Both the position numbers and the translations under genes were made by a program. A DNA stretch of 64,000 bases from Oculina patagonica (taxonomy: Eukaryota): assembly GCF_052425735.1 (NCBI RefSeq), contig NC_135759.1, forward strand, positions 32,922,001 to 32,986,000. Direction: 5' to 3'. The notes under the pieces were generated by a model. That model did not search any database, had not been told where the DNA came from, and worked only from the letters and a program-made list of their open reading frames with translations. Below, one piece after another: positions 17,943 through 56,400 of this stretch (positions are counted from its first letter, which is position 1; each line of letters opens with the position of its first letter).

Positions 17943-18796
17943 ATGCACTCGTCGATTTGGGGCTCAGTTCTCGTCATTCTTCTCTTGCTCCTTGCGGTAC
18001 AGTATGGCAACGGTAAGCAAGTAACACTTCCGTGATTTTTAGCATGACAGAACGTAGTTGTAATTCTCTTGTATTGTTATTTAATTCTTGATAATCTTTC
18101 GGGCCCTTTTCAAAGCCTACACTTTGTGTCGTAGGGACCAGTTCACGAAGATTGTTGTCATTATAACGTTGTTCTTTCATTAGGCAAAACGAACGCTCAA
18201 GAAAAGGACCTCGTGGACTCCGATGGTGAAGAGGTCGAAGAGGAGAGAGAGTCTCAGAGGGTAAAAACGGCACATACAATTAAATTCTTACATAAGCTTA
18301 TATTACACTGAAAAGGTTATCATAATAGGCCCCATTATAATACGGGTAAGAACCGATGTTTGGGTGAAACTTCAGAGGTGAGACTTTAATTAGCGGTGCA
18401 CCTTGAAAAAAATGCCCAATTTTTTTTTTCAAGTATGTCTTTAAAAAATCCGTTTTAATCTTCGACATTTGTATTCATCCTTGTTTATTTTAACATTTTC
18501 TCAATTTGAATGTAGTTTTGCACATCAACAATTTCTTACAATATCGCAGCGTTTGACATCATTACTTTTTAACTTTACAGTCGGAGATCCCTCGACACCA
18601 CCGCAGCCGTGAAGCACACGCCCGTCATAACAGGAGAGCCGAGCGAGGCCGCTACCGATCCGTTTTAGCTGTAGGCGTGGGTTGTGCAGTGGCCGGCGGC
18701 TGGATTTGCTTGGCAACAGTTGTTTATGTGGTGCGCTATCTTCGCGCCAAAAAGAATGCGGGTGCACGTGATTCTTCGTCTGAAAACTTGCTGTGA
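17943..18796 (+). CDS. Gene D: small (120 aa) type-I single-pass membrane protein with no globular ectodomain; not in the ORF track
   Basis: Exons 17943-18012 (MHSSIWGSVLVILLLLLAVQYGN, signal peptide), 18184-18260 (acidic linker) and 18581-18796 (SEIPRHHRSREAHARHNRRAERGRYRSVLAVGVGCAVAGGWICLATVVYVVRYLRAKKNAGARDSSSENLL*). Canonical GT-AG, 363 nt in frame. Upstream TATA-like motif at about 17535 and UTR-exon donor GTAAGT at 17651. Confidence 0.8.
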
Positions 18797-23620: not shown

Positions 23621-26311
23621 ATGGAGACTGGTTTAAATCTGGCTTGTTTATTTTTACTTTCACTATTTAGTATCACAGGTAAGATAAAAAGTAATTTTGT
23701 AAGCAACTGCTAGCCCGATAACAACAGTACTCCGTTTGCTATAGCTTAGCTCATTTGATTTAACTAAAAGTATACATCACCCTTCCCAAACTCAATTGAC
23801 AACTGATATTATACGTTGTGAGTTTATGTGCATACACGTTTGCTATCATTCAGGCCTTCTCAGTCTAGTTTTTCGCAGTTATTCCAGTCTGTCAAGTTAC
23901 ATTATTGCTTCTTTTTTCTCAATTTTACATCAATTTCTACTTGTGAAAGTGATTAATGAAGATATTAATAATAATAATTTAATATTTATAATGCGCAAAT
24001 CATACATGTAAAAAATTATTAAATGCTCAAAACTAATTAAAAAATTCTTAAATTAAAATATTTAACAAAACACAAATATGAAACTAAGGTAAGTAAATAT
24101 CAAGTAAAGTAAATCATCGCAGTGTATTTCCAATTTAAGCAATTGGAATAAAGAAGCCCGAGAGAAAAATCAGGGCTTTAACGGGATTCGAACCCCGTTG
24201 ACCTCCGCGATTCTACTTGTGTTTAAAAGAATAGCTAACATGATTATTCTGCTCCTCTATTAGCCGCAAATCTCGAACTGATCTCGTCTGACAAGACACC
24301 TTGTAAGAAAAGTGCAGTAAACTACAATGTCACACTCAGCAAAGGCGCCAAGGCTGGAAAATATTACAAAATGGCAGGAATTCACAAGATGGACGAATGT
24401 CTAGGACACTGTTGTGGGTCTAAGAGATGTGACGTTGCCTTCATGGTGAATAAAAACTGTTATCTAGTCAAGTGTTTTAATTCAGACTCGTGTGCCATCA
24501 AGCAGTCCGATAATTCCAAGTTTGACACGATGCTTTCTGTGGTGTCTAAATCAAACGCAAAGGAGACAAAAGGTATGCCCGCTCATTTTCTGCATAGCAC
24601 TATTTTATGATTTGTTTTCTCATTTTGCCAAAAGTTATAAAAATATAAATTAACGTTAATGTAAAGAGTGACGTTTCTCCCAAAGAAAGATATACTTTTG
24701 AGAAAAGTACCAAGAAGAATTTTTATTCCTCGTGTAGTATTATTTTCTCACCAACGCCCTTCTTGCGTTTTAACCAGATATGCTTCTGTTTTAACTAAAT
24801 AGCTAACGCCTACCTATTTAGTTGGCAGTTCTCAATTACCGTACTTGTGCATTTATATTATGAAATGGTTATGCCTACGCAGCGTTATTTTCATTTATTT
24901 CTGTCTAGCCTCATAGCCCAGTCAGTCGACTGGTTCAACTAGAATTGTCTTCTCCGAAACTTCTGGATTCCGGTTAAATATTTGCCCTTGTAGTATAACT
25001 TCTTTGCTGGTGTTAAAGCTCGTCGGTTAGCACTCCAAATGATGCTTAATCACTTCTATCGCCGACACCTTGTTTGATTAGCCTCTCGTTTGTTTGATTC
25101 GGTTATCATCATGAAGACATAAACATATTTGCATGATGGTGAAGAAATTATTCTACATGACACGAGCGTCGGACAAAGAAAAAATCTGACTGGTCCCCGA
25201 CGGGAATCGAACCCATGGCCTCCCAGATACCGGTTGGGCGCTCTAACCAACTGAGCTACGTAAGACTCGCTGTGAGCTAGGCCATTTACTAGGTTGATAA
25301 GTGACACGCGTCCTGCATACTGCTAGGATCAGCAATGTCGAAATCATCAAATTTGTAGTAAATAATAAAGCATGGTAGATGGTAGATTTTAAGCTCGGTG
25401 ATAAAAAATCTTTGATCTTTCATCACACAGGAGAAGGAAAAGGGGAACCTGCTATGGAGGAAAACCTTCAGGAGAAGGCTTCTGGAACAGAAACCACAGA
25501 CCCTTTTATTGTTGACAAAGGAGAAGATGACATGACCACAGTGACTGCTTTTGGGGTGAGTTGGAGCTTTTTACTGTGTAGTCACTACGGCAAGACGGTG
25601 AGATGAAGACAGAAACCGCAATCGTCCTTGGGGCCACCTTATGTCGAGGCTAATAAATTTAGGTTTAAACAAAGTTACAGTCCTTTATTAAAGCAAGTCT
25701 AGCCATCCTGGCCAATTTAATTCAGTGGCAACATATTCGTTGGTAGGCGAATTGATAGAATATAAATGTGATTGCAAGATGCTCGTGTGCGTCGAATTCC
25801 TTGCAACTGCAACACGCTCAAGTCACAGAAGGTGAAGAAACAGCTGTGTTCACGCTGGGCATTCTTTATGACTTGGCATAGCACAGTGTCGACCTTTTCT
25901 CACAATTCCAAGCAGTTTAGTATCAGCATTGTATTTATACTCAAAACCTTAGCATATTGTCAAGCCTTGTGAAGAGAATGAACGCATTCTTTAACTTGGG
26001 ATATTTCCTTCATTTACAACCAAATTCTCAGAAATTGGCAAAAGGTATCAAAAATCAAAATGTGACTCTACTATACAGTATGGTTAGAAACTATAGAAAG
26101 CTGTGTACATTGTCAATAGTGTTTTAGACACTTCAAGACTTAAGATGTTTTTGACAATGTTTTGTAGACTGGAAACACAAAACGATCAAAGCGGTCTTCT
26201 GATGTAATCGACATGGTGGTAGCGATCGGCTGCGGAACTGTGGCTGTTGCAGTGGGCGTGGCTGGTGTCATTGTGATGACAAGACGTTTGATTGACAACA
26301 ACAAATCATGA
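23621..26311 (+). CDS. Gene A: type-I membrane protein (211 aa): signal peptide, one MANSC/KIAA0319-N-like Cys-rich domain, acidic linker, TM helix
   Basis: Exons 23621-23678 (METGLNLACLFLLSLFSIT), 24264-24572 (C...NVTLSKGAKAG...CLGHCCGSKRCDVAFMVNKNCYLVKCFNSDSC), 25431-25555 and 26168-26311 (TGNTKRSKRSSDVIDMVVAIGCGTVAVAVGVAGVIVMTRRLIDNNKS*). 636 nt in frame. Probable UTR-exon donor at 22300. Confidence 0.87.
24105..24212 (-). mobile_element. tRNA-related SINE-like repeat fragment
   Basis: B-box GGTTCGAATCCCG on the minus strand with a non-tRNA tail. Confidence 0.55.
25150..25425 (-). mobile_element. tRNA-related SINE-like repeat (same family as 27270-27495)
   Basis: Minus strand GTAGCTCAGTTGGTTAGAGCG...GGGTTCGATTCCCGTCGGGGAC...TTTTTTCTTTGTCC. 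A related copy lies on the plus strand at 27270-27495. Confidence 0.8.
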
Positions 26312-30984: not shown

Positions 30985-33900
30985 ATGATGCGTTTCATTC
31001 AGTTTCTGTTGTGTCTGATGTCACTCAAATCAACGACCAGAGCTCAAGGTGTGCATATTTATAACGTCTTTGCTAAGAAATGCTATTAAATGCGAGAGTC
31101 ATCAACATCTAATCGTCTAATTTCTCTTTACGGTATCAACAGACAGTCGAACCTCTACTTACTGACACTTCTATAATACGGACACCTCCCTATTGCGGAC
31201 AGTCTACTTGGTCCAAAAGAGACCAAAATTCATATTAATTCTACCTCTATAATACGGACACCTCCACAAAACGGGCACTCTTCCCTATCCCTTTTGGTGT
31301 CCTTATTAAAGAGGTTTGACTGTACAGTCGAACTTAATACGAATACACCCCCATTACGGACGGTTTACTTGGTCCAAAAAAGACTAAAAATTCTTACAAT
31401 CTCTACCAACGTAATACGGGCACCACAATAATACGGGCTCTCTTCTCTGCCCTTTGGTTTTTGTATTTAAGTGATTCTACTAAATACTTAAAATGTTAAG
31501 TCATGAGTTTTACCTAGCAGGTAGTTAGCTCGAGAACGTAACCGCGTCGTCCAAGTTAATTGCACACCTCCTAAATTTCGTTCTTGTATATATTTTGTTC
31601 TCTCCAAATGTCAGTAAAAAGACGATCTTAACCGTAGTTTTATTCCAAACATTTCAGTATTCCAAATGTTTCTCATGGACCAGAAAGGGGAAAACGCTCA
31701 AGTCCTGGACACCGTCAAGTTACCCACATGCACTCATTTGGACATAAAACATGACGTCACGTTGCGCGGCGGAATCAAATCCGGGAATTTCACCAAGCTC
31801 GGTTACCTGAGAGACATGCAGACATGCGTGGATGCTTGTTGTCAGGATCAAAAGTGTGACGTGGCTTTTATGCCAGGTCACGTGTGTTATTCAGTAAGCT
31901 GTTTTAGTGAGAAACTTTGCGAAAGTATTCCAGCTGTGCCTTCCACTGCAGCCAATAAGAGTGTGAGGATTTCTCACGTAGTTCGTGGCGGAGGGAAAGG
32001 AGATGACTTGGAGCAGTTTAAGAAAACACAAGGGATGGCAAAATACAGTAAGTTAAATTTTTATATATATACTTCATTGCAATCTAAAGTTCTACGTTGA
32101 AAAAAGTTTTCACTTAACTGATACACCCAAGATGTTGAGTCACTACTAGTAAATTGTATATCGGTAATTCAGGAATACGTTATTTAGTGTACAAAGTAAA
32201 AGAAGGTAAGATGTATTTTTATTTAAAAAAAAATGATGGCATCTTTGGGGACTGATTGACTTAAACACTCTGTACATTTTTCATACTTTGGGCTAGATAT
32301 TTGTTCAGTAGGATCTTTTTCACTAAAAATGGAAAACATAGATACTCTACTAAGAAGACCTCTAATAATATAAAGTAAAGCAATACGGAAAACATTTTCG
32401 TAAAGGTCAGGACACACTATGCGACAAGTCGCAGCGACAGGTCGCTGCGACGAGTCGCTCCGTGTTTACGGCTTACAAACAAGTCGCTGCGACAAGGTGT
32501 TTGTTTGGTGTACAAACAAAGAATTCATGGTTAATTCATATTTTGTCGCAGCGACTTGTCACAGCGATTTGTCGCAGACGTGTACACACGATGCGACAAC
32601 GCTGCTATCGCTTATTTTGTCGCTGCGATGTGTCGCACAAATTCAAACCAGTTTGAATTCTGTCGCAGCGACACAGTTTGTCGCATGTCACACGAGGCGA
32701 CGTGTTGCAGCGACGTGTCGCCTAGTGTGTCCCGACCTTAAAACACTATTACTCGCACCAAGTAAAGAGGAATTTTTTCCCGATTGTTGAAAACATCTGC
32801 ATATAATGAAAGCTAACTTTATTATTTTCTTACAGCTCAGAAAAATTCAGATCAATGCACACCAAGTCGAATTATGACCAATCACACTCTAAGGGGAGGC
32901 AAGACAGCTGGGCAAATTAAAGACCTTGGAATGGTGGAAAGTGTAGAGGACTGCATCGAAAAATGTTGCGGGGAAAAAACATGCGAAGTCGCTTTCCTGG
33001 TAGATGGCAAGTGTCATTCGATCGAGTGTTATGGAGACGAGCTTTGTCAGACTTTTCCTGTGGAAGATGAAACGTTCTCTCCGACGGTTGTTTATATGAA
33101 CAAGAGAAACGGCAAAAGAATGAAGGATAAAAGTAAGGCTGCTAAAACGGTTTCTCATTAACTTCGCAAATTATCTCGGGGATCAATCACATGCTGAGGG
33201 GACTGAATGGGTAAAGTGGGAATTGGATTTGGGCAAATTTTCACTGGGAAAATGAGATTTGGGTCACTGGGACTGGGATAAACAATAGTACTGGGACTGT
33301 AATTTGTAATATCGGAAAGACAATAGGCTGGGGAATGGGACTTGGGCAATATTTGGTCTGGAAAATTGATTTTTCATACCCCCACTTCAGTATCCTCCGT
33401 GCTAGCTGGCCTTACATCCGCCCTATTAATGGAATGATTTTTTCTTTGCTGTCTTACTGTATAGGCACGTGCAGTTCCCCATGTGTGTCGGGAGTTTGTA
33501 CAGCTAAAAACAAGTGTGCGTGTGATAGAGGATTTGAAGGACCGCACTGCAACGATACTGCAACTGCAGGTAGGTTGAGGAGGGAGGTGTGGTGTTTTGA
33601 AAGCTAGAGCTTTGTCCCCTCCCTTCTATATATTAAAGTGGACTTATTAAAGTACCCACTATTTTGAACAAAGAAATTGTATTTGTACATAATCTTCGCT
33701 TTCACTTAAGCTATACAATATTTTCCTTAATTATGTCGATGTAGGCTTGGTCAGTATTGAAATGCCAAACTCTATACATGCATGAAATCTCCTGTTTCCA
33801 GTCAAGGAAAAAGAATAAGACATTGGGTTGAATAAAACCACAACCAAATGTATTGAGTTAAAAATTGTATGTTTTGCCTCCACTACACATCGGGACACAC

Positions 33901-36900
33901 ATCTCAGTTATAAATTGGGTGCGTTGGCCAGCCGAGCCACCGTCCCGTTTATTCAACCTCAACGGATAATACAAGAAATTACAAACTATGAATAACGCTA
34001 GAAAACTTAATGCACAAGAGCCGGACACGAAAACCCCTAAAAACCAGCAAGTGGAGAAAACGGGGAACGTGTGCCCCCGACCAAGGCAGTGGCGCAACCC
34101 TTGGGGTTTTAGGGTATTCTATCTAACATACTGTAAACAAATACTTTTCGAAATATATGATCTTACAGTGATACAATTATAATAGGAGAACTATTTTTTT
34201 TTTTACACAAAACGAAGCGTAAGCCTGCATCCACGGATGACAAAGGAAATAAAAATAAAACCAAACATTGACCAAAACGTGGCGAAGGCTGACCGTAGAT
34301 TGTCTCACCTTCCTAACGGCCAGCTATTACAAACTCAAATCCCACTATACATTGCACACCGCAAACCCGCGCCCAACCCTCTAGTTCGTGCTGGCAAAAC
34401 AGTAATTTATGCTAATCTAAGACTATCACAAATTACATTTTACTTTTAAACGATATTCCAGGTTTCTGTGGATTGTCTGGCTGTGGAGTGTTTGGAGAAT
34501 GCTCGTTCAACGACACATGTGTTTGTGAGCCAGGATACTTTGGCCACCTCTGCAATAGCACGTGTAAGTAGACAATGGTTTCCAAGGAAATGTTCTCGTA
34601 TGCCCAAAGGGCTAGAAAAAGTCTCGAAGTGGACCAATAATCGACAAAGCTGTAGAATATTATTCTTTTAGGAAGCTGTTTTGATCCCAGCTGCGGAGAA
34701 GAAGACAGTGCTATCTTGCTTTGATTTGAATTCGCTTGGTGGAGTGACATTTCATTGTGCCTGAAAGTCGTTACAGACGAGAGGTCATGTATCCGCAAAT
34801 GTTGCAGCGTACAAAAAATGTGCTATAACACGAGGGGAAATGGCAGGCACAACAGAAAATCCATCGGGGACTTGCCGAGGGGACAAATTTTGCAAGGATG
34901 CGATTTCCTCTTGTTTGAATGGTGCATGTTTTTTTCACTGCAATTTGTCCATGCAAGGTGACCCTTCCGGAGAATCGACCTTCATAATCGGCGTAAAAAA
35001 CATTGTTGAAAATATTGGTTTCGAAACGAAGCTAGTACATATACGTTCTCATGCATTACCTCTATGGTACTTCGAGTGCACTTTGGTAATATATTCTAAT
35101 TTTCCCTTCCAGTAACCTGTAACCCGCAATGTGAAAATGGAAGATGCATCGACAATTCCACTAATTCAACAAAATGCTACTGTGAGATAGGATGGGAAGG
35201 ACAGTTTTGTAACAAAACAAATGGAGGTGAGGAAACACATAATGCACTATGAATGGTCCTAAATTGCACGAACCTGGAACCAACTTCAGACAAAAGTAGA
35301 TTTAGCCACTATTTCCGCTTCTACTGCACTTACAAAAACTAGCGCTTTGTCGAATTAAAAGAAAATTAGTCCTCTTAAACATTGTAAAGGATAGGAAGAG
35401 CGAATTGAATCTTATACTGGCTTTCTGACATTTTTTATCAATATCTTGGTATTTTGATTGTTTGTCTTTTTTGGTATTTTTGCACCAGTGTTGAATATTT
35501 GCTGAATACATAACGGCCTAAAATTATGTTATCTACTTTTTAAAGCCGACTTTCTCAAAAATTCTGTCATGAAATGAATAGAGAGGTCGTAAGCAATCCA
35601 TTACATTGATATAAGTAAGGTCATAAGCGTTAGTGTTATAAGCAAGTTCTTGTTTAGTCGGCTATTTTCTATTTACTAAATAAGGCTTTGACAGATGTGC
35701 TTTGTTCATTAGTTAAGTCATAAATGAAATGAACACAACAGTAACATGGTAGTGTGATACATTTTCGTTATCATTCTTAGATCGGAAAATTTATTCACCT
35801 TCAGGAGGGGAAGTGTTATTCACAAAAATGGACCAAGAGGCAGAGATGGATATCAAGGTAATGGAGAACATTCAAATATCCCTTTCTTTTCTTTCCGCCA
35901 ATACAAAAACTTGACACATCCTTTCTTTTATTCCCAAAAAATAAAATTTACTCATCAAATGTGAAGTAAAGACATTAAATCTTACTAAATTTGATTAACT
36001 CTGCCACAAAAAATTTGATTAACTCTGTCACAAAGCAGGACCTCTTTGCAAATGGTGTTATTCTTCTATAAAACCTACTGAATCTTTTACAACTGCCTTC
36101 TCGGGGTGGGGAGCTTTCATGTTAAATGCTCGTCTGTCGTGGTGGAAGCTTTATTTGACCTCTAAATACCATTCTAAAATAGACACACAAATGTACGAAC
36201 CAAAGCGGCTTTAAGGACAACATTTTAACATTCAATATTAGTGCACTGCAAAATAAATAAAAAAAACTAGACACTGAGCTTGCAATATAAATTACAAGTA
36301 TTCGGGTTTTTTAATTTTAGTGATTAGAAAATATTTGTTTTAAAACACATTCAACATGACTGTCAATAAAACAAACCACACGCCACGCGACCTTTCTAGA
36401 ATTAGTTGACACTACAGCTGCCCCCGCTGTTACTCAATTTTCGTTAAAGTTATAATTGGTAGACTTTCTCTTCTAAAGTAGAGGTAAATTAACTATAAAT
36501 TATGTCCTATTTACACTAGATTCATCAAATACCCTCCAAATCAGCTGAGTCCATCTCGGCCCTGGCTGTGGCGATCGGCTGTGGAGTGGCGGCAGCCATT
36601 GTTGGAAGAGGGTCTGAATGGGGGGTTCCACATGTCGGTAGTCGGTTAAAAATTCCTTACTTTGTCGGTTGTCGGTTAAAATTTTCGACCTTTGTCGGTT
36701 GTCGGTAAATCTCAGTTAATAATTAAAAGTGCCAGTTAATTATTAATATTTGTTAGTTAATTTACGCAGTTTTAAGACTTTAAACTCTAGACGAGATGTA
36801 AAATTTGTAATAAAACACTTAAACCTCGTTAACTCTGTTTTTTTTTTTAAGAATGTGTTCGTCTAGTACCGATAATATTACCAAAGCTTTTATTCTAGAT

Positions 36901-37592
36901 GTGAATTTGTTTCCTGTCGATTACAGGGCATCGAAGTTTTTAAGAGAGGTAAATCAGACAAAGAGTGAAACACCTACTCTAGCCCTTGGGTTACGTAATT
37001 TTGCTATTTTCGGAAGTTTGTTCTCCAAGAAGTCCACAAGCACTTATTACGCTTATTAATTAGCGGCTTTCGTGCCTTTACCGTGGGTTTCTTTTTTTTG
37101 CCAAAATTTCGTTGCCATACGTATCATTCTGCAGCGTTTAATGGATCTTCAATGATTTTACACTTAAAATAAATCAAACTTAAACTTGGTGGGCTTCAAT
37201 GAAAAACAACATCCGATATCAAAAAACAATTTCTGTGAAATTTAGTTACATACTTCAGCTGCACTTCTTTGTCACAATATCATCTTTTGAAGAAATCTAC
37301 AAATCGTCTCGAACACACATAAAGACAACTATCATTATCTTTTACCGTCACATGTCGTCCGTATAACGTCGGACTATGTCGGTTATCGGTTAGAATTAAT
37401 TTGTCGCTAATCGGTAATTTTTTCCTCGTTTTGTCGGTAGTCGGTGATATTTTTCGCCCTTTGTCGCTAGTCGGTTAACCCCATTCAGACCCTCTTGGAA
37501 CAGCCACCGTGGCGTTTATCGCGCGAAAAATTTTGGGTAAAAAATCTACCAATTATGAGCTACTAAGAACACCTATAAGACACAAGACATAA
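30985..37592 (+). CDS. Gene B: type-I membrane protein (442 aa if uninterrupted): signal peptide, 2 MANSC-like domains, 3 EGF-like domains, linker, TM helix, YxxL tail. The last exon is interrupted by a transposon in this sequence.
   Basis: Exons 30985-31048, 31658-32047, 32836-33132, 33465-33569 (EGF), 34462-34563 (EGF), 35113-35226 (EGF), 35781-35857, and 36520-36607 plus 37501-37592. Removing the insertion and one TSD copy restores IHQIPSKSAESISALAVAIGCGVAAAIVGTATVAFIARKILGKKSTNYELLRTPIRHKT*. Probable UTR-exon donor at 29407. Confidence 0.88.
31144..31482. mobile_element. Two tandem Tc1/pogo-type MITEs (CAGTCGAACC termini)
   Basis: CAGTCGAACCTCT...AGAGGTTTGACTG|TA (31144-31322) is followed directly by a decayed second copy from 31325. 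A related fragment lies at about 26912-27030. Confidence 0.7.
32404..32738. mobile_element. PIF/Harbinger-type MITE
   Basis: TIRs AGGTCAGGACACACTA / TAGTGTGTCCCGACCT, TAA target duplication, internal TGTCGCAGCGACA repeats. Confidence 0.85.
33196..33397. mobile_element. MITE with GAGGG..CTGAA termini and 6-bp TSD
   Basis: Ends GAGGGGACTGAATGGG / CCACTTCAGTATCCTC; flanks CATGCT and CGTGCT (one mismatch). Confidence 0.65.
36608..37494. mobile_element. 887-bp non-autonomous TIR transposon inserted in the TM exon of gene B
   Basis: Perfect 16-bp TIR GAGGGTCTGAATGGGG / CCCCATTCAGACCCTC, perfect 6-bp TSD TTGGAA (36602-36607, 37495-37500), subterminal TGTCGGT(A/T)GTCGGT repeats, no transposase ORF. 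Confidence 0.93.
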
Positions 37593-40500
37593 CGAATACT
37601 TAGACTTCTTTAAGTGCCGCTTATTTATTTCGAGATAAGAGTCAATATCTCTGGTATTCACAGTAGGCTCGGGCAGATACCATTAATTAAAAAGGCTAAC
37701 AATATACTAAACCGCTAATATTAAATAGCTAGCTAGGTTAGCAATCTATTCTGTATATCATGCTATGATTGCTTTCCTTGAGGAATTGTGTATTATTTAA
37801 AAACGTATATATTTTTATTCATTTTAAACACTAGAGAATTCGAACACTCCAACTGATTGTATTTCCTTTTTGTTGGAAAATGATTAAAAGATAAATCAGT
37901 TCTTGACGATAAAATTTATATTAATTATCTTTGTCAACTACCTTCGTACAGTACGTTTTCCACGGTTGGTATCAGGTAGTTTTCTTCCATTCAGGCTTAA
38001 TATACGATAACTTTTGTAAAAAAAGAGGATAAACAACAGAAAATATTAAATTGTACATCGCGCAACTAATTTGAGATAACTTTCTATTCCCGAGTAGCCT
38101 TTCCGATCCGAAACTAAATAAACCAAATAAAATCGAGCTTCCGTTTGTCAGTTAAATAAAAATTTCAAATAAATAAATCGCATCTCAAAAGAGGATAAAA
38201 CTAGTACGTTTGCCTGAGTTGGTGGTGTGAAGCTGGAGAACGACCATAGTTATATAAACTCACGGGACTTTTATCCATGAAAGCCTTTTTTTAGGTTTCA
38301 AATTGCTTCGACTCGCTTACTGTCCAATTAAACATGCCAAACGTGGTAAAGATAACTTGAACAGAAGAAAAGGCTGGCTTAAAAAATAGTTTCACTGTTG
38401 TGATCACTTCAGACAAGTGTACTGACATAAATAGAGAAATATGCGAACATTAAAGAACTTGTCTGAACATTATAAGGCAAGATTTGAAGCAATGCTTTCC
38501 TGTGATTTTATATGACTTATTTGAAGATAAACAAGTGTAACTGACGCCGATTTACATCTGTTGAAGTTATTAGAAATCCTTAGTTCTCGATTACCTATAA
38601 AATCACACTATTTTCTGCTCTCGTTAGCATACTGGTTGTCATGGAAACGTCTAAAATAAACTTATGTGGTCCCTGATAAAGGTAACAACAACATTTATAA
38701 GTTATTTTCAGCAATGTTTAAAAAAGGAAAGTAGAAAAATGTTTTAACTTCGCATTAAAGGATATCATTTGTCATGTTATGTGCGCAAATGAATAGATTA
38801 TTGACCTGCGGAAAAAAATCATTTAACGATATATCACTTTTTAGGATGCAAAATGATGCAGTTACACTGGCTTATCTTGCTTTATTTCATTTTGCCTTTG
38901 GCAAAATAACTATTAAATTATATATACTGAATTAACTATTGAAAACTAACTATGAGGAAACTATTTGCATCTTATTTTGGCAGATGTGTAGATATGTAAT
39001 TAGATACAGCATGCACGTTTTGTGCAAAACCTAAGAAAAGTAGAGCACAACTTCACCTAAACGGTGTATATGTAAATATGGATGAATTAATGTTAGCTGT
39101 GTAAAATATTTGTTAAATAAAGATTAAAAACAACATAAAACGGTCTTGTCTTGGATTAGGAACTTATTGATGACGTGACGTTTCCATGACAACCGAATCC
39201 CTCCTGTAACATAACAAAAGAGCAAAGGAAATCAGTTTGAATAGCTGACCTTCAACGAACCAATGAATGATTAATTTAAAATGTTTAAAAAAAGACTGAA
39301 AAATTGGAGCATCAAGTAATACGGCCAGTGGGCATTCCTCTTCAAAAGTTAAAAACAGCACGTGACAAATTTTATTGGAAGTACATACAGAGAATCACTC
39401 AAAATTATAGTCTCTTAAATTATTTCTGAACATGCATTTAGAAGTCTCTTTCTGGCATGACCACGAGGACTCCTGCAAATGTCCTTCCCCCCAGCCCCCT
39501 TCCTCCTATTCATGTTGTGGAACTACAAATACATTGTGTGTTTCTGAAAACGAAAAGGGAAGATTTAAATTAGTACAAAATCAAATTATGGCCGCGTACT
39601 TAGTTTACAATTGGGAAGTGGAACGTTTTTTAACTTTACCAACCGCAGAAAACGAGTTAATCATTTGAAATTTGGTGTGCTTTGTGGCGATACTTCCTTT
39701 ATTTCTAGAAATATCAATTATAGTGGTAATGAGTGACAAAATCTTCAATAAGATGATAATTTATGAGTTAAAAAAATATATAGAGAAGATTACGTGGAGC
39801 AGATTGCTCGATAGCACGCTCTGTCATCCAGCAACGTTTTCTAGTACTATACAAACTTTGTTTACTGTTGGACACAAAATTGCAGGTTTTGAGGCTTCCG
39901 AAGACCTTTCGAGTCAATGTTTACAAAACAGTGTGCATAATTCAAAGCTGTGAATCTAATTATGATAATTCGCTTTGTACGAGCGCACGGGAAACAAAGC
40001 TAAGAACAATAACGTGCAATTACTTGCGCGACCTTAATTTTTTGAAAAACGAGGGAGGAACGACGTCATTTGCACGACACCTTAAGCTTATGCTGTTTCT
40101 TATATATACTGTCGTGGCGCTTTTGTGTTAAATATGCAATCTTTGCACGCCAATCTTTCCAGTTTAGACATTTTTATATGTTCCTAATAATTTGTGTGAT
40201 TTTGATTACGTAGAACATCCCGATGGATGGAGATCAATACGATAACGAGGAAGAATCTCGTCTGGCACAAGATGGAAAACTCCTTGTTCGTGTTAGCAGG
40301 AAACCTGAAATCAGCGCTCACTTGCAAGTCCAGTTGTACAAATCAACATTGAAAAGAAAACCAAGCAATACAGGAATATTATTATATCCTCTCTTGATTA
40401 ATTACAACGAAAATAAATTTGCTTATGCGAAAAACAACAAAACAGAACTTTCTAAAAATGAGAGAATTTATCTAAGGTACAAAGATAATTTTTATTTACA

Positions 40501-42467
40501 CATTGTAAGCTCATCTCTTTAGAATTAAGTTACTGGGAAAAAATGATCAGTAGTTATATCAAGGTAGATAACTTATTATGAGTCCGCCTTACTAACAATT
40601 TTTAGCATGTTAGTACATACAACATGGTGACCATACCAAAAAATAATCAAACTTTCGTGTGAATATCGCAATTTTTTCCTACCTTATCAATATTAAATTT
40701 TATTACACTGAAAGAAGACAAAGTTTTTGTTAAAAAAAAACACGCCAATCCAGCAGTCGCAAACTGTAATTATGACAAAGATTAATGTTGATATACTTAT
40801 AATATGCCAAAAATAAACAAAGAAACAGAATAACAAAACAAAAACAAATTTGCAGAATAAGAATAATACGAAATATGATGCATTATCATGTATTGACCAA
40901 GAAGGCTTTACTTAAGCTTATGTTAGTAAACAGTAATCTATTGTAAACCTTTTAAAAAAAACATTTATTTATTTGTTTTTTGTAAATAAATAAATAAATA
41001 AGAATAAATAAATAAATAAAATAAGAAACAAAAATAACAAGATCAATCAAGAAATAGTACTCTAATATTAATTATCTGAGGATGCGTTTCTATACTATTA
41101 TAATAATAGAGAAAATCTGAATTTTCAAAAAAAAATCATTAAAATCTCTTAAAGTGTCTTTAAAAACTACAGATATGATAAATAGAACAGTTTCTAAGAA
41201 GATTTCCGCTGAACTTTTAAAACATTTGCCAATATTTTCAAGATGTGTTGTCCGTGACATAGCTCCTTTAATACAGTTAAGAAACACTTAACGAAACTTG
41301 AGCTCTCAAGCTGACCCCGCGAGTGAAAATGAATTTGAAAATGTCCATATTTTTAAAGCGGACTTTTGACGTCAGTTTAAAATAACTCGCTCTTTAAGCA
41401 TTTTTAGGAAGGTTTGACATTAGCTTTCTCGAGAATGCTTTAGAATTTAATCGCGGGGTCACTAAGAGAAATGAATTACAGTGAGATGTTACCGTGCTAT
41501 GAGAAGATTTTTGGTAATTAATTTTTTGCACTTATTACTCATAATTTCAGCGGAATCCTCTTAATAACTATCTTATGTTTTAATTTATTGTTTTGTAGTT
41601 TTCTTTCTTTGACCTCAGTGAAAGGCGGTCCCTCTCTTTCAAGCAAGTACTTAACGGAATAAATGCGAGTGAGGTTAGTTTAATTTGACGAAAACATGCT
41701 ACCACTTTTAATTATCGTACCTCTTTTTCCCTCCTCCTCTTTTGTTTGAAGATAACCTCCATCTTCCTCTATGTAAACTCATTATTTGTGCATTCGTGTA
41801 CACAATTAATATAAAAATATGGAAAGGATTATGAACTTGAGGGAGTAGAGCATGCAAAATCAGAACTGGCTTTTTTAGAAAAGTATTTCTGTCACAATTC
41901 CTAGCCTTTCATTCAGGCGTTATAAAAACCATAGAAAAATTCGATGTCCACCTATTTCGTCACATAGAAAACCAAAAGACAACGGTGTTAGATTCACAAA
42001 GAGCTTGAGCTGTTAAAAGTCCCCGTGGGGAGAAATCTTATTATTACTACTAAAAAACAGCTTGCTGGCTGAGCTTATTTATATTATTACTTTTTTGGAG
42101 TATTTTTATCATACTATACTTGTTGTAAATTCGATTCATTTTAACGTTGGTATTTATTTGCGAATATACAACTGTCCTTTTAATAACGTAGATAAAAACT
42201 GAATTTTTATTGTAAATAATTAATGTAATGAAAAAAAGAGAACAAGACTTGTGGCAAAGGGAATAATGTTTTGCTTTAAATTTAAATTATTTTACTCATT
42301 TGATGATCTTGTTTTCAGTTAGCATATCGAACGAGTTGATAAGTCCTGATGATTTTCTTTTACATCGAGTCGATGTTTATGTAGTTGTCACCTTTATTAA
42401 AAGCGCCTGCGAAAAAATAATATTTAGAGCTGCTAACGGTATTGCCTTTGGACAAACAATCAATTAA

Positions 42468-44664: not shown

Positions 44665-45786
44665 ATGGATCTGACAAACACATCTACAAGGAATTCCTCT
44701 CTTGAGAACTCGACCACTGATCAGATTGTTTGTCCGGCTATTGGCGATGAAACGACATCAAAAGCCATCCAAACAACTGCATACTGTGTCGTTCTTCTCC
44801 TCTCCTTGGTGGGGAATACTCTGATAATACTAGTCGTATACCAAAACCCTCGCATGTGGACGGCGTCCAACTACCTTATCGTCAACATGGCTGCATCGGA
44901 CCTCCTTCTTCCCTTCTTTGCAGTTCCGAGAATGATCGTGGAAGTCCTGGTCGGTAGAGAGCGATGGTTGATCGGAGGTACAGCCGGTTTGACCCTATGT
45001 AAACTTGCCTATTTCTTCCAAGACGTCTCCACTGCAGTCTCTGTTCAGAGCCTTCTTGCCATAACAGCTGAGAGGTTTTACGTGGTGATGTTCCCATTTA
45101 AAGCAACTGCGATGAAGTCCAAGATCAAGTATGTTATTCCCTTGACCTGGCTCATGGCGGTCGGTCTTCATGCTCCGTATCTTCAAGTCTTCAAGCTGTG
45201 TTTGGTCCATGGAAAACTATATTGTTGCCAGAGGTGGTCTGTGTCCCTTCAAAGCAAAATTATATATTTCTTTTTAATTATCAGTTTAGTGTTTGGCGTG
45301 CCGTTAATTACAATTGTGATTTTGTATGCATTTATTGTTTACAAATTGTTTCGCCAAAAGCTTCCACCCGGTGCCCGCAATTCCATCACTCAGAATCAGC
45401 GAGATCAACGGGAGAGACAAAACCGGAACATCCTTAAAATGGCGGTGACGATCGTTGTGATTTTCTTCCTATGTTTTTCGCCACTAGTAATCCTAGCCCT
45501 GCTTTTAACTACCGGCAGCGTTAGCATAGACAAGTGTAAAGCCGAGATATTTCGCATGGTTGCAAAGTTTTTCGGTCAGTCAAATTGCGCCTTGAATGTT
45601 TTTGTTTATTACGCGTTTAATTCACAATTTAGAAGGGGATTTATTTCTAATTTGAAAAGAATGTTTTTCTGTGGTGGAAGAAATAATAATCGCATAAATA
45701 TAAGCGTGAGATATTCCACTTCAAGCCAAAGAATTTCTCTCTTGTCAGAAAAACGGAATAAACGTGGTTGTACTGCAAAGGAATAG
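44665..45786 (+). CDS. Class A (rhodopsin-like) GPCR, neuropeptide (RFamide/tachykinin)-receptor-like
   Basis: 373-aa single-exon CDS with N-terminal N-glycosylation sequons, GN (TM1), NMAASDLL (TM2), TM3 Cys, ERF, TM4 Trp, CFSP (TM6) and NVFVY (TM7). Confidence 0.93.
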   Translation: MDLTNTSTRNSSLENSTTDQIVCPAIGDETTSKAIQTTAYCVVLLLSLVGNTLIILVVYQNPRMWTASNYLIVNMAASDLLLPFFAVPRMIVEVLVGRERWLIGGTAGLTLCKLAYFFQDVSTAVSVQSLLAITAERFYVVMFPFKATAMKSKIKYVIPLTWLMAVGLHAPYLQVFKLCLVHGKLYCCQRWSVSLQSKIIYFFLIISLVFGVPLITIVILYAFIVYKLFRQKLPPGARNSITQNQRDQRERQNRNILKMAVTIVVIFFLCFSPLVILALLLTTGSVSIDKCKAEIFRMVAKFFGQSNCALNVFVYYAFNSQFRRGFISNLKRMFFCGGRNNNRINISVRYSTSSQRISLLSEKRNKRGCTAKE

Positions 45787-47038: not shown

Positions 47039-49145
47039 TTAAAGCCTTTGCTTAGCGATTAACAGATACAAATTGCATATCCTTGACCAAAATGAATGTC
47101 TCGTCAGTTTTTGCTAGCATTGATAACTTGTGAAGGATAAAGCTAAATGAGAAAACGTATAGAAAAAATAATAAGAAGAAAAAGAAAAGGAAAGAAATTC
47201 GATAATTATCAATGGCGTCGGGCTTAACTTTCTAGGAACTTTGATAATTTAACCATGGACTGATAAACAAAGATAGTATCACGCACAACTTTGTAAAGAT
47301 TGTTAGTACAAAAAAAATGTAATGTAGCAAAAGGAATAAATAATCAACAATTGTCTTGATCGTGTCGATCCTTTTTATAATTACACTACTCGCTAACACT
47401 ACTCGATAATGTACTGACATACACCAATTGTTAATATTCAATTCAAGACCAATATTACCCAGCGAAAATAACTGGCCATACCAAGCTATCAATAATTGAG
47501 ATCTGCAACCAAGATATATTCAATTATGTCAACTGAGGGAGTAAATCCCATGCATTTATCTCTGTTTGCTCATTTTTTAAAAGGTATTTCATGTGTGATT
47601 AAGATTAGGGAAAAAATTAACATCTGGTCCTTATTCACACTGGTAAAGAATACTAAGACTTTGACAGTTAGTCAGTAGTCAACGATAGATACGACCCTTT
47701 AAGCTAGCTCTGGTACCCACTGACTGTTTTTGTTTTATTTCTACTAGTAAACGGAATTGCCAATTACATGTATTCATTTTTCGTGCACTTTTTTATGTAA
47801 CAAAACCAAGCACAATATTAATCGACCTTCTTACGTCTTATACTTAATCCAGACAACAAAATTGCGCGTCAATCAATCCATCAGTTTTGCATTTTAATGA
47901 CGATAGGAATCAAGAAATGTGTTTGCGGTTGATTACCAGACCATCTGTTTACACAACACCTTACACGACCAATCCTACCCTCGTTACTGGTCGTCTGTTA
48001 TTTGATTTCGTTGCGATCGAAGGAGGCGCAGCGATTGCAGTTGCAATTGGCAACTACTGTACGTTTTTAAATTTTCCTTCGGAAAACGTTTGTATGTGTT
48101 TGTATGTTTCTATGGCAATGAAGTTGTTCTTCGACTTAATTTTGGATTTTTTCGGTTTAAGATCAGGTTTCAATGAGATATTTTAGGTTTCTTCGAGCAT
48201 TTTTTTGCAGTATCTGCGTCGAATTTTCAAATTTAAATATTTTTGACATTTTCTAAATAAATATATATATATATATATTTAAAAATTATGTTAAGAAATC
48301 TTACAATTTTTAGATCTAGATGCACTATGCTTCTACAAAATGAATTGTGGGGAGGAACGGCGAAGGGAGGGAGGAGTGTCTAACTACAAAGTTGTAGGTG
48401 CCGGAAAAGTAAGTAAGTAAGCAAACTTTATTAGGCCAGGGTGGTGCATTCAGCGAATGGTGGTATCCAGAGGAGCCCCTGTAAAAAAGTTGTTGGATCA
48501 ACCAATCAAAAAATATTCGGGTACCCTGTGGTTGACTAACATTATTCAATCCAGAAGGAGTACAACGCTCGTTCTTATTGGTCGAAAAATTATCTATTAT
48601 TGTACCGATAAACCTTTAGAAATCCGACAGCAAGAGACAAATATAACTTCCTTCTGCACGCAGTAGGACAATGAATCTTCCATCTGCATTTTAATGTCTT
48701 ATTTTGGTTCACAAGATGATGAAACAGAAGATCTCATTGTTATAAATTATTATTATGTACACAATTCACCGATAATCGACCAATCAAATGGAATTTCTCG
48801 CGCAGACCACAATGGGAGAAAGGAACTTCAGCAAATAAATGAAAACATTCAACTGAAAAAAAGAGCGACAAAGGAACACAATAAACGGTGATTTGTTTTC
48901 CATTGACATTTGAATCAAAATGAAATTGTTTGGCGGTGATCTCTTTTATTGCTTCACTTTATAAACAGTGCCATCTTTATATGACAGAAATATTGTAAAT
49001 TGATTGGAAATAACGTCTGAAGCTGCATTTATATATTTTTGATTAATTGAGAATACAATTTTCAAACACCAGCTGTCCCTAACAGAAGAACACAACACAT
49101 TATTGCTTGTTGCTTCATCAGCTCAAGTTCAGTGCAAAAACTAAT

Positions 49146-50087
49146 ATGGAATTAAATTTGTCCAACATCACATTTTATTTGAAACAAGACGTCCATGGCT
49201 GCCATCCATACAAATGGTATTATAGCGAAATATCTCCAGGAGTTTTTGAACTTATTTCAGCCATACTTGATTGTTTGATATCCGTTTTTTCAGTCTTTGT
49301 CAACGGGCTTGTAATTTTTACTATACACCAATCTACGAACCTTCATTCGCCGTCAAACTTGCTTATTGCCGGGCTGGCCATGTCGGATTTTGGAACAGGA
49401 CTTATTACGCATCCAAGCCATGTAATCGAATACGTGGCAGCCGTCCGCGGCGACAACTGCACGGCAAATATTGCTTTTATGGTCATTAATATTTCTGGAT
49501 GGTTGTTCACAATACTCTCGCTTACAACGTTGACGTTCATAGCTGTTGAGCGCTACTGTGCGGTGGTATTTCATCTCAGATACAACGAAAAAGTCACCGT
49601 GAGGCGAACTATGATTGTCCTGTTGTCTATATGGTTCACCGTTCCATTAGCTTCCACTCTAATCGCAGTGAAAAAATTGAAGGCTCTCAATTTTCTCTTG
49701 GCGCACGCATTCATTATTCTAATTGGAATCTTCATAACATGTTTGTGTTATTTTAAAGTTTTTCTTGTCCTCCGGCGGCATTATGGACAAATTAGCATCC
49801 AGCTACAAGCTCAATCTCTGCAGCAGCCAGCAAGTAACGCAGCCCACTACAGACGGAAATTCTTCACAGTTCTTTACATTGTAGGAGCATTTGTGGCTTG
49901 TTATTTGCCATACAGCATTGCGGTTTTGGCTCGTTTCGAACAGAGAAATCGTATGACCATGCTCGCAGTTTTAGGTGGTAATTCTTGTCTTAACCCTTTA
50001 ATATATTTCTGGAGGATACGAGAATTACGGGAGGCTGCCAAAAGTCACGTAGCTAAAATAGTCAAATGCTGCAGAAATAATCAATAA
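49146..50087 (+). CDS. Class A GPCR, melanocortin/adenosine-receptor-like
   Basis: First ATG at 49146 (MELNLSNITF; the ORF-track start at 49107 is not ATG). Motifs LHSPSNLLIAGLAMSD, ERY, CYLP and NSCLNPLIYFWR; very short ECL2. Confidence 0.9.
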   Translation: MELNLSNITFYLKQDVHGCHPYKWYYSEISPGVFELISAILDCLISVFSVFVNGLVIFTIHQSTNLHSPSNLLIAGLAMSDFGTGLITHPSHVIEYVAAVRGDNCTANIAFMVINISGWLFTILSLTTLTFIAVERYCAVVFHLRYNEKVTVRRTMIVLLSIWFTVPLASTLIAVKKLKALNFLLAHAFIILIGIFITCLCYFKVFLVLRRHYGQISIQLQAQSLQQPASNAAHYRRKFFTVLYIVGAFVACYLPYSIAVLARFEQRNRMTMLAVLGGNSCLNPLIYFWRIRELREAAKSHVAKIVKCCRNNQ

Positions 50088-53435: not shown

Positions 53436-56400
53436 TCAAGGATCGTCAGGTCTTGGCTCATCATCATCGTCATCATCATCATCATTTCTTTTTCTCATCA
53501 GTTTCTTTGTCACCAGAGCAATGGACGCTGTGCCAACCATTGCGCATGCGATTCCCACGCCAATAGCAACGGCCAGGCCAGAGGACTGCGTCTTATTGTC
53601 CAGCTCGGACTAAAATGAAAAACAAATTTCGTTTATTACATTTTATAAACGCATTGAGACATCCTGTTAAATGAAAAATTTTGAAACCGATTTAAAAAAA
53701 ATACAAAATTAATCTTATCAAAACTTTTAAAACCAAATATTCGGCCGCCTTCTGTTGCCTTTATCAGAGTTTGAAACAGTTAATAAATGTAGAGTTAATA
53801 AGTTGTTTGCATACCATCCTTCAACATCCAACCAACACATGTTGAGAGTTGTTTTTTTTTTAATCATGTCAAAATTGTTACAGTCAACTCTCTCTAAGAC
53901 GGACACCGTCGGGACCGGCCCGAACTGTCCGTCTTAGAGAGGTGTCCGCCTTATAGAGAGTCGAGGTAACCTAACACCAGAAATTTTGAGTTGATAAAGC
54001 TTAACGGCTATGCACAACGGATACACGTCTGTTTTAAGTCGCTTACTTGAGAAAAACCTAAAAAGTGGGACAAAAATAATATCAGAATTCGACTCATTTG
54101 CTCATTACAAACGGTAATACTGTAAGTATAAAACTACCTCCCTGGTGCCCATGCGCAGAGATGTAATACGTTATAAGGGATTGTTTTTGGTAAGTTTGGT
54201 ATTCTAAAGCGCTGACTTACTATGATATATGTCAATACCATGTTTTGGAGTATTATTCACTAAAAAATAACTTTTTGTGCGTGTCCGTTAGCGGTTTCAA
54301 AGTGTCCGTTGTCCGTTTTAGAGAGGTTTCCGTCTTACAAAGAGTTTTGTTACAGTAAAATGACTGAAAAACGGCAGGGACCATCACCAGGTGTCCGTCT
54401 TATGGAGGTGTCCGTAACGAGAGAGTTGACTGTATTCTTAGCAGTTCAATTCCTAAGCGACTTAAGAAGGCAGCTCTTAGATAAGTAAGTAAGTAAGTTG
54501 CCTTTATTTAAAAACACGATTTGGATAAAAGCTTACAGCTTGTGGGGTCGTGTAAATTAAAAGTATTAAAAGTTAAAAATATTTACAATTAATTAGGCTA
54601 TTTATATTTGTATTTGATTTTAAAATTAGTAAAAGTTAAACTTATAAAACTATTTAAATTTGAATTAATTTATAAACCAGGCGACTTAAACCATATTCAG
54701 TCATTGCCTCGATATTGCACCATGAAATAACAGAATAATTACGTACTCAATAAATAAATAATATAAAAAATATATATATATTTTTTAAGAGGATGCTCCC
54801 GTCACATGACGTGGTTTTCAGGGATGTCCTCACATAAAACTAACTACAAGGTTAAAAATCTAGTTTGAAAGGTAAGAATATTAAATTACAAGTATGAGGT
54901 TCTAAAAAATTAAGAATTATGTTATAAAAATTTGTTCAATAAAAAACTAAAAGTATTTTGCTATTAAAATAAAGTACTCACTCCCGTAAAGAGGGTTTTC
55001 TCAACTTCTTGACTTTCTGGAATTGCTACGGTTCCACCTAAATGAAAACAATCCTTAGGAATTAGTCAGTTGCGAATAGATCACCCTGTTAATCTGCAAC
55101 ACAGTAGTATCAGATTTTGTCAGGTCTTCTTCAGTGTTCAAGAACTGGCATGCACGGCGGAAGGACGTTCTACCGCTCAGCTAGAGGAGACTTTGAAGCT
55201 ACGCCACATAACAAGGTTCAAATGTGCCAACCTTCTCCCCACTAGCGCTAGGATTTTTTAGTTGGTATGTTAGATATGCGTAGAAAATAATGATAGCATA
55301 TGTTAGCCTTGGTGGGAAAAATGAGATGAATGTTATTTAGTTAGTGACACAATCGACTTTTGTTGGAAGAGTTCAGAGGAGACAGAAGAGTCTATTCCGA
55401 GATGCCTGTGTCACTGACCTTTCTCAAATAATGTTTTTTATGAAGTAAATTAAATTACCAACTGTGGCTTTCGGTTTAAGGGTATGTTCCTCTACATGCA
55501 AACCTGAAATTAATTGAAGTGTGTGTAACTACATGCATACATGCAAAAAAAGTACTGCCCGGCACGAAAGTTGGAAAAACAAGGGATTAGGAAAACCAAT
55601 CCTTGGTAAGCCTTTTGTCGTCAATCTGGCTTCTCAATGAGAGCATACCTAAAGGACCCCAACAGAAAAACAAAACATCCCTAAACAGAAGGGAATCTTG
55701 ACCCATTAACTTACCCTTAACAGAAGGAAGGTCGTCGATTTGCAAAGTTCTGCATAAGCATAGCTTATATGGCTGCAAAATGCCTTTTGTTGACAATTCG
55801 TTTAATAATAAACAATTATCCTGCGCAATTTTGCAAGTTGTGGTCCGATTTATCTTGTAAAAGAACAGCTTTCTATTTTGTTGAAGTAATAGCCTCACTT
55901 AGCCACGGCCTCGTCGGCTAAGTATCAGGCGATTATCCACGTGATTTTGCAGGATAGTTGTCAAATATAAGTTCAGTAATTGCATTACAGAAAAAAAAAA
56001 AAAAAAAAATCTGATCCTGGAAATTGTCTTTCTTACCCGGCGTATAATAGCAATACGTCAATTTCATCTGAGCTCCATTCTTGTCCATCTGGAAAGGATT
56101 TTCACCTTCCATGTTTATCTGATATCTTCCAGCGTTTTTATCAAAGTTAACTGCTTCTTCTTTCAGTGTTGCACCTTTGACTTGTTGGCATCCACCGCCG
56201 CTCAGAGAGTACAAGTAAAAAGGTTTGTCGACAGGCAGCGAGATAGCATTGGTGATTTCACCTGCGAGTTAGGCAATGAAATGTACAATTACAAGACGTT
56301 AACGAGGGGTGGTAGCAACATATAACATAACATAACATAACATAAAACTTTATTTATCCTCGAATTTAATATAGCTAAGACAAGCTAGTTTCTTCGAGAA

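Follow-up and report, generated by a model that had tools for sequence, protein, structure and literature searches.

Among the closest described counterparts of the locus examined here are the piggyBac-type CMITEs of Acropora, TTAA elements for which both filled and empty alleles occur in genes (PMC2872659). The window considered, a 64,000-nucleotide stretch of the Oculina patagonica genome (positions 32,922,001 to 32,986,000 of the forward strand of contig NC_135759.1, assembly GCF_052425735.1), holds an 887-bp transposon that splits the transmembrane (TM) segment encoded by LOC144644233, hereafter gene B. With the CMITEs this element shares a short body devoid of transposase, inverted ends, a target duplication, filled and empty alleles at one coral locus and membership of a many-copy family. 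It differs from them in its 6-bp duplication of variable sequence (against TTAA), its GAGGG...CCCTC ends (against CCYT), its length of 887 bp with both smaller and larger relatives, and its coding-exon position (against an intron); the CMITEs, being piggyBac/TTAA elements, were rejected as its family. The element very probably jumped into gene B recently, the insertion being an allele of the reference haplotype and the uninterrupted ancestral allele being the one present in all read sets.

An earlier note, made from the letters of the window, had described an 887-bp element with perfect terminal inverted repeats and a target-site duplication inside the codons for IVG/T, and each of these features was confirmed in the sequence (Table 1). 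The inverted ends are perfect over 16 nt, or 17 nt when the adjoining A/T is counted, and comparison of copies places the start of the element at the G and not at the preceding A or T. The insertion point lies in the TM codons IVG/TAT of gene B, between VG and TA, and removal in silico of the element together with one copy of the duplication gives ATT GTT GGA ACA GCC (IVGTA). No open frame longer than 68 aa was found in the interior of the element and a Pfam scan of the internal frames gave no match, the 68-aa frame itself matching only copies of the same family. Both ends carry subterminal arrays of TGTCGGTnGTCGGT units (TGTCGGT repeats) at a spacing of 25-30 bp, which share one orientation (direct, not inverted), an unusual arrangement, and ATTAAA/AATAAA signals are present inside the element at 36722, 36809 and 37168. 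With its inverted ends, fixed-length duplication, dispersed copies and empty site, it is a non-autonomous element of class II (cut-and-paste).

A search of the coral's own genome with the whole element returned 56 matches, among which were six copies of ~870-890 bp with 94-100% identity, while more than 30 elements of 1.0-1.75 kb share with it just the first ~270 bp and the last ~140 bp. The exact 16-nt end is no chance match, since it occurs 525 times genome-wide and a reversed control 16-mer does not occur at all (0 matches); many of these ends pair up as miniature transposable elements with inverted repeats (MITEs) of ~120-550 bp. Perfect 6-bp duplications, differing in sequence between copies, flank 14 of the 16 family copies checked, so the family makes 6-bp target duplications. 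One copy only is identical to the element in gene B (0 differences in 887 bp); it lies in the opposite orientation on the same chromosome, 35.6 kb downstream (G000:C2:32994228-32995114) and thus just beyond the window, and the next closest copies differ at 23, 26, 31 and 57 positions. Because a copy on the same chromosome, and no other, is identical to it, the insertion is very recent; its recency, which had been proposed before from the sequence, is further supported by the intact duplication and the otherwise intact reading frame. The two identical copies would be related as parent and daughter or as sisters and would stem from a very recent event on a single chromosome; their spacing looks like that of a short-range hop. 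Elements of 875-1,725 bp with the exact 16-nt ends were also present in three coral metagenome contigs (L061, L072 and L099), for which BLAST against the subterminal regions of the 887-bp element gave no match; several element families may use the same 16-nt ends.

Contigs of four public sequence runs were aligned to window positions 32800-38400. Three runs were typed as DNA (X1, from organism A; X2, a coral metagenome from another study; X5, from organism B) and one as probable RNA (X15, also from organism B), with more than 3,400 contig records existing beyond those listed for the four. Contigs of all four runs join 36601 to 37495, skipping 893 bp with six letters that fit either side, which corresponds to the element and exactly one duplication copy. 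The earlier suggestions that the insertion might be polymorphic and that reads be examined for the empty site were thus borne out, the precise empty site being found in the contigs of every run. In the three DNA-typed runs the joining contigs are at single-copy flank depth, with values of 36.7 for run X1 (flanks 44.3 and 30.8), 54.2 for run X2 (flanks 56.1 and 54.2) and 124.7 for run X5 (flank 117.8). In runs X1 and X2 the contig pieces on either side of the join match the window without substitutions, and run X5 is 1-2% divergent from it. In run X15, contig 9 (887 nt) comprises exon 6, the left part of exon 8 running straight into the right part, and the 3' untranslated region to 38087, and another contig runs from exon 3 into exon 4; gene B is therefore expressed and spliced as modelled, with its TM exon intact.

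Within the assembly, a search for an empty-site copy found none. An unplaced 4,014-bp contig (G000:C633, L022), a haplotig annotated as the partial gene copy XP_078355352.1, aligns to window positions 34590-36607, with 97.6% identity to the left flank and 95-98% across exon 3 to exon 8. It carries T>C at 36602 (Val to Ala) and ends exactly at 36607, the last base of the left duplication, which is what trimming of an empty-site haplotig at the alignment break would give; the right flank of the element is single-copy. All four runs differ from the reference at 35117 (synonymous, C against A) and at 37861 (a 1-bp deletion in an A-run). These differences are variants private to the reference haplotype, or else small errors in the consensus, and they suggest that the reference haplotype is a different, rarer one. 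In introns 3 and 4 the summed contig depth at 33174-33360 and 33735-34482 reaches thousands against about 45 in the flanks, as for high-copy repeats, and run X5 contigs show skips of 95-568 bp in both introns, which therefore vary in structure between samples. Intron 2 contains a repeat-rich element of GTCGCAGCGAC-type motifs in both orientations (32419-32790, + strand), probably a separate MITE.

The explanation we favour is a recent jump of a non-autonomous cut-and-paste transposon into LOC144644233, in its last common coding exon, with the identical copy 35.6 kb downstream most likely as its source or its companion in the event. The insertion would be an allele captured in the reference haplotype, and the uninterrupted ancestral allele, expressed and correctly spliced, would be the one carried by every examined read set, the filled allele being presumably loss-of-function or strongly hypomorphic. 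So read, the filled site is an ordinary rare or private polymorphic insertion allele. The 36601/37495 join is a DNA allele and not a product of splicing, because no GT..AG or other canonical pair occurs at the seven equivalent cut positions of the 893-bp skip and because the join is present in DNA-typed runs. The empty site is ancestral and not an excision product, since it has a single clean TTGGAA and encodes sequence that is conserved in other cnidarians. Several points weigh on the other side. The typing of runs as DNA or RNA is a guess and as such uncertain, with the spliced structure of X15 contig 9 arguing for RNA. The filled junction occurs in the assembly and in none of the listed contig records of the four runs, and contigs drop variants. 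Neither a transcript nor a protein of the filled allele was observed in the runs examined, its loss of function being predicted. The data are compatible with a sequenced colony that is heterozygous, homozygous or mosaic for the filled site, and what identifies the copy 35.6 kb away as the most likely donor is its identity and its proximity.

Removal of the element from the transcript as an intron, which would leave the filled allele functionally silent, is scarcely credible and was rejected. RefSeq isoforms X1-X3 on this assembly do encode an uninterrupted TM segment, and the probable RNA contig of run X15 has the precise join; however, the same join stands at single-copy depth in three DNA-typed runs, none of its seven equivalent boundaries has a canonical pair, and the RNA run carries the organism label B, as does DNA run X5, in which the site is empty. 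The earlier note had named transcripts precisely lacking the element as evidence that would speak against its interpretation; formally such a transcript exists in run X15, yet by the same reasoning it derives from the empty allele. It is also very improbable that the element is an assembly artefact, not truly at the site and placed there by a reference mis-joined or mis-consensused through a repeat. The missing filled junction in the listed contigs of every run, the end of the unplaced haplotig exactly at the insertion boundary and RefSeq models that behave as though the element were absent would all fit such an error, but a mis-join would not yield an element that is complete, exact at both ends and flanked by a perfect target duplication of the 6-bp length typical of the family (14 of 16 sites), and both flanks are single-copy and collinear.

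An insertion that took place somatically, within the sequenced colony, with only part of its cells filled and the filled and empty sites sharing one haplotype background, appears unlikely. It would agree with the empty site of runs X1 and X2 on flanks free of substitutions against the window, with the identity of the two element copies and with the existence of C633 as a third, 2.4% divergent haplotig, given that three forms in a diploid would fit mosaicism if run X1 came from the assembled colony. Run X1 may, however, come from another individual than the assembled one, and the differences of all four runs from the window at 35117 and 37861 suggest another germline haplotype; moreover, assemblers rarely retain low-fraction somatic variants.

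Gene B was modelled on the + strand from canonical splice sites with consistent phases. In its empty form the spliced model encodes 442 aa with one terminal stop, identical to RefSeq XP_078359803.1 (LOC144644233 isoform X1), in agreement with the earlier statement that the coding sequence flanking the element is otherwise intact. The protein consists of a signal peptide, two MANSC/KIAA0319_N-like domains (Pfam PF23597, found twice with E about 5e-10 each), three EGF-like domains, a stalk, the TM segment and a 22-residue tail. Isoform X3 has eight residues fewer at exon 7, which points to an internal acceptor. In isoform X2 an alternative donor and a further exon (Table 1) swap the NYELL tail for EHPDGWRSIR, and an EHPDGW(R/K) tail is also found in proteins of Porites lutea and Actinia tenebrosa; at the level of sequence, the alternative tail splice is conserved.

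Relatives with the same layout were found in Hydra, Clytia, Nematostella, Actinia, Dendronephthya, Montipora and Porites, and gene B, which has all the features of the group, belongs to a cnidarian family of MANSC/EGF type I membrane proteins (the LOC144644233 orthologues), seen in cnidarians in the search made. Its ESISALAVAIGCGVAAAIVGTA TM stretch, in the middle of which the element has inserted, varies hardly at all across Anthozoa, can still be recognised in Hydrozoa and is followed by a conserved NYE[LY]L tail motif, the alignment showing both to be kept in Hydra, Clytia, Nematostella, Dendronephthya, Montipora and Porites. The EGF repeats alone account for automatically assigned names such as "notch homolog", "adhesive plaque matrix protein 2" and "cueball-like". 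Gene B is like KIAA0319/KIAA0319L and MANSC proteins in its N-terminal MANSC/KIAA0319_N-like cysteine domain, single TM and short cytoplasmic tail, whereas, unlike the KIAA0319 type, it lacks PKD domains and has two MANSC-like and three EGF domains instead. Immunoreceptor tyrosine-based inhibitory and switch motifs (ITIM and ITSM) follow the patterns (I/V/L/S)xYxx(I/V/L) or TxYxx(V/I), are tyrosine-phosphorylated and recruit SH2 phosphatases. The S-T-N-Y-E-L-L tail of gene B fits this loose pattern as well as that of YxxΦ sorting signals, a resemblance of motif only.

In the filled allele, read-through into the element is predicted to give a product of 412 native and 33 element-coded residues, ...AAAIVG-RGSEWGVPHVGSRLKIPYFVGCRLKFSTFVGCR followed by the stop. 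The peptide proposed before departs from this through a frame slip after ...GSRLK. In the X2 splice form, in which the new stop precedes the 37536 donor, decay of the transcript would be expected. The filled allele would lose the last eight TM residues, the RKILGKK stretch and both conserved alternative tails; the conserved TATVAFIARKILGKK stretch and either tail would certainly be missing from its product. The earlier note was right that the stop-transfer RK and the tyrosine-motif tail are lost, as RKILGKK and NYELL lie beyond the insertion and the TM and NYE[LY]L are conserved from Hydra to corals, but it overstated the damage to the membrane segment in describing half of the helix as lost, since 19 of its 27 uncharged residues remain. 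The best 19-residue hydrophobic window (Kyte-Doolittle 2.13) lies before the element, is followed by Arg and is unchanged by the insertion, whereas the best values decrease from 2.17 to 1.84 for a 21-residue window and from 2.23 to 1.48 for a 23-residue window. Because it keeps a 19-residue hydrophobic segment that an Arg follows, the truncated product may still be membrane-anchored, by a short anchor and carrying a foreign tail, although mis-sorting or degradation is just as possible. The earlier designation of a null or secreted-decoy allele is therefore not established, and secretion as a fact was rejected; a secreted decoy is one possibility among these, and the filled allele is best described as a putative loss-of-function or strongly hypomorphic allele.

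The insertion also affects the available annotations. RefSeq isoforms X1-X3 have the TM uninterrupted despite the lack of fitting canonical splice sites, so the annotation pipeline must have skipped the element. GenBank KAL9984816.1 (570 aa; window 36556-41659, + strand) reads two codons into the element, follows the element's 68-aa open frame, then takes the right half of the exon out of frame and continues to exons 40214-40480 and 41588-41659; the chimeric nature of this prediction is due to the insertion. The locus is hence an annotation trap, in which the element is either skipped like an intron (RefSeq) or fused into a chimera (GenBank).

Table 1. Features of gene B and of the inserted transposon, in window coordinates.
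Feature	Position	Strand	Remarks
Exon 1: start codon and signal peptide	30985..31048	+	spliced model identical to XP_078359803.1
Exon 2: first MANSC/KIAA0319_N-like domain	31658..32047	+	
Exon 3: second MANSC/KIAA0319_N-like domain	32836..33132	+	run X15 contig on 32836-33132 resumes at 33465
Exon 4: EGF-like domain 1	33465..33569	+	
Exon 5: EGF-like domain 2	34462..34563	+	
Exon 6: EGF-like domain 3	35113..35226	+	
Exon 7: stalk	35781..35857	+	77-nt gap in run X15 contig 9 equals exon 7 length
Exon 8, left part: juxtamembrane segment and first 19 hydrophobic TM residues	36520..36607	+	
Left target-site duplication, TTGGAA, 6 bp	36602..36607	.	overlaps codons GTT GGA and first base of ACA; empty-site joint with 6 letters fitting either side
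Non-autonomous DNA transposon, 887 bp, no transposase	36608..37494	+	internal open frames <=68 aa
Left terminal inverted repeat, 16 nt, GAGGGTCTGAATGGGG	36608..36623	+	525 genome matches against 0 for control
Left subterminal array, 3 units of TGTCGGTnGTCGGT, 30-bp spacing	36633..36714	+	
TAA stop reached by read-through into the element	36706..36708	+	adds 33 element-coded residues
Right subterminal array, 4 units of TGTCGGTnGTCGGT motif	37373..37483	+	direct orientation relative to left array
Right terminal inverted repeat, 16 nt, exact reverse complement of left end	37479..37494	-	
Right target-site duplication, TTGGAA, 6 bp	37495..37500	.	
Exon 8, right part: rest of TM, RKILGKK, STNYELL, TAA stop	37501..37592	+	alternative donor 37536/37537
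Isoform X2 alternative tail exon, (E)HPDGWRSIR then stop	40214..40245	+	

Among the superfamilies of cut-and-paste transposons, hAT includes the Ac/Ds elements, which prefer short-range transposition to linked sites, and some hAT groups make duplications of 5-8 bp. The short inverted ends of the element and its arrays of short subterminal repeats are Ac/Ds-like, and the arrays and the apparent local hop resemble hAT without either being defining. The duplication, in contrast, is 6 bp against the typical 8 bp, the subterminal repeats of the two ends point the same way, and no hAT transposase partner was found among the regions and contigs searched; membership of hAT is possible. IS3EU/GingerRoot elements have TA..TA (occasionally TG..CA) termini and 6-bp duplications, the complete IS3EU families always ending in TA..TA (PMC10045372). 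The 6-bp duplication is common to both, but the element ends in GA..TC (GAGGG..CCCTC) and so lacks the defining termini, and IS3EU/GingerRoot was rejected. Dada elements make duplications of 6-7 bp. They are described as inserting specifically into multicopy small RNA genes (PMC3706591, PMC8869645), and Dada was rejected too, the flanks and duplications of the 16 copies being unrelated AT-rich sequence, one of them in a protein-coding exon.

An autonomous, transposase-encoding partner with the same ends was not found in 20 genome regions, 120 metagenome contigs or the matches of internal frames, in a search that drew on the first 100 of the 525 end matches. Twenty unpaired end matches, followed inward for 9 kb, all either belonged to short MITEs whose partner end has one mismatch or lacked a partner, and the elements of greatest length (2.5-2.8 kb) are MITEs that contain other, nested repeats. 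The long open frames of L033 belong to a decapeptide-repeat gene and were rejected as a transposase. A 16-mer scan of the metagenome contigs gave only MITEs of ~100-200 bp in coral contigs, and the matches in bacterial contigs were due to chance.

Elsewhere in the window, a TM segment similar to that of gene B (LAVAIGVGIACAMVGTAS, around 53532-53582) is encoded by a neighbouring minus-strand gene that is unrelated and has a poly-Asp tail, and the TM module LAVAIGxGxAxAxVGTA...KK also occurs at 18626-18757 (+) and 26189-26299 (+). This sequence likeness suggests that neighbouring genes share or have shuffled a TM exon. Reading by eye further indicated a reverse-transcriptase open frame of a retroelement (435 aa; 2310-3617, - strand) and two intronless, seven-transmembrane receptor-like open frames of 373 and 326 aa at 44665-45786 (+) and 49107-50087 (+), respectively.

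Transposon insertion polymorphisms in genes are common, and the present case is not surprising in kind. It provides an insertion polymorphism in a stony coral that can be tested by PCR, sequence-level evidence that a family of non-autonomous DNA transposons moved very recently in a coral, and a probable natural loss-of-function allele of a conserved membrane protein whose TM and NYE[LY]L tail have hardly changed between Hydra and corals. A bolder reading, which we put forward tentatively and regard as doubtful, is that the identical pair may record a transposition only a few generations old, or one that took place somatically in the colony sequenced. It would be the work of a coral transposase that is still active and belongs to an uncharacterised lineage, distinguished by 6-bp duplications, GAGGG..CCCTC ends and direct subterminal repeats, and with no partner found so far. 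If this were true, the locus would report live on the activity of DNA transposons in a stony coral, and would also be a natural knock-out of a membrane protein that is conserved among cnidarians.

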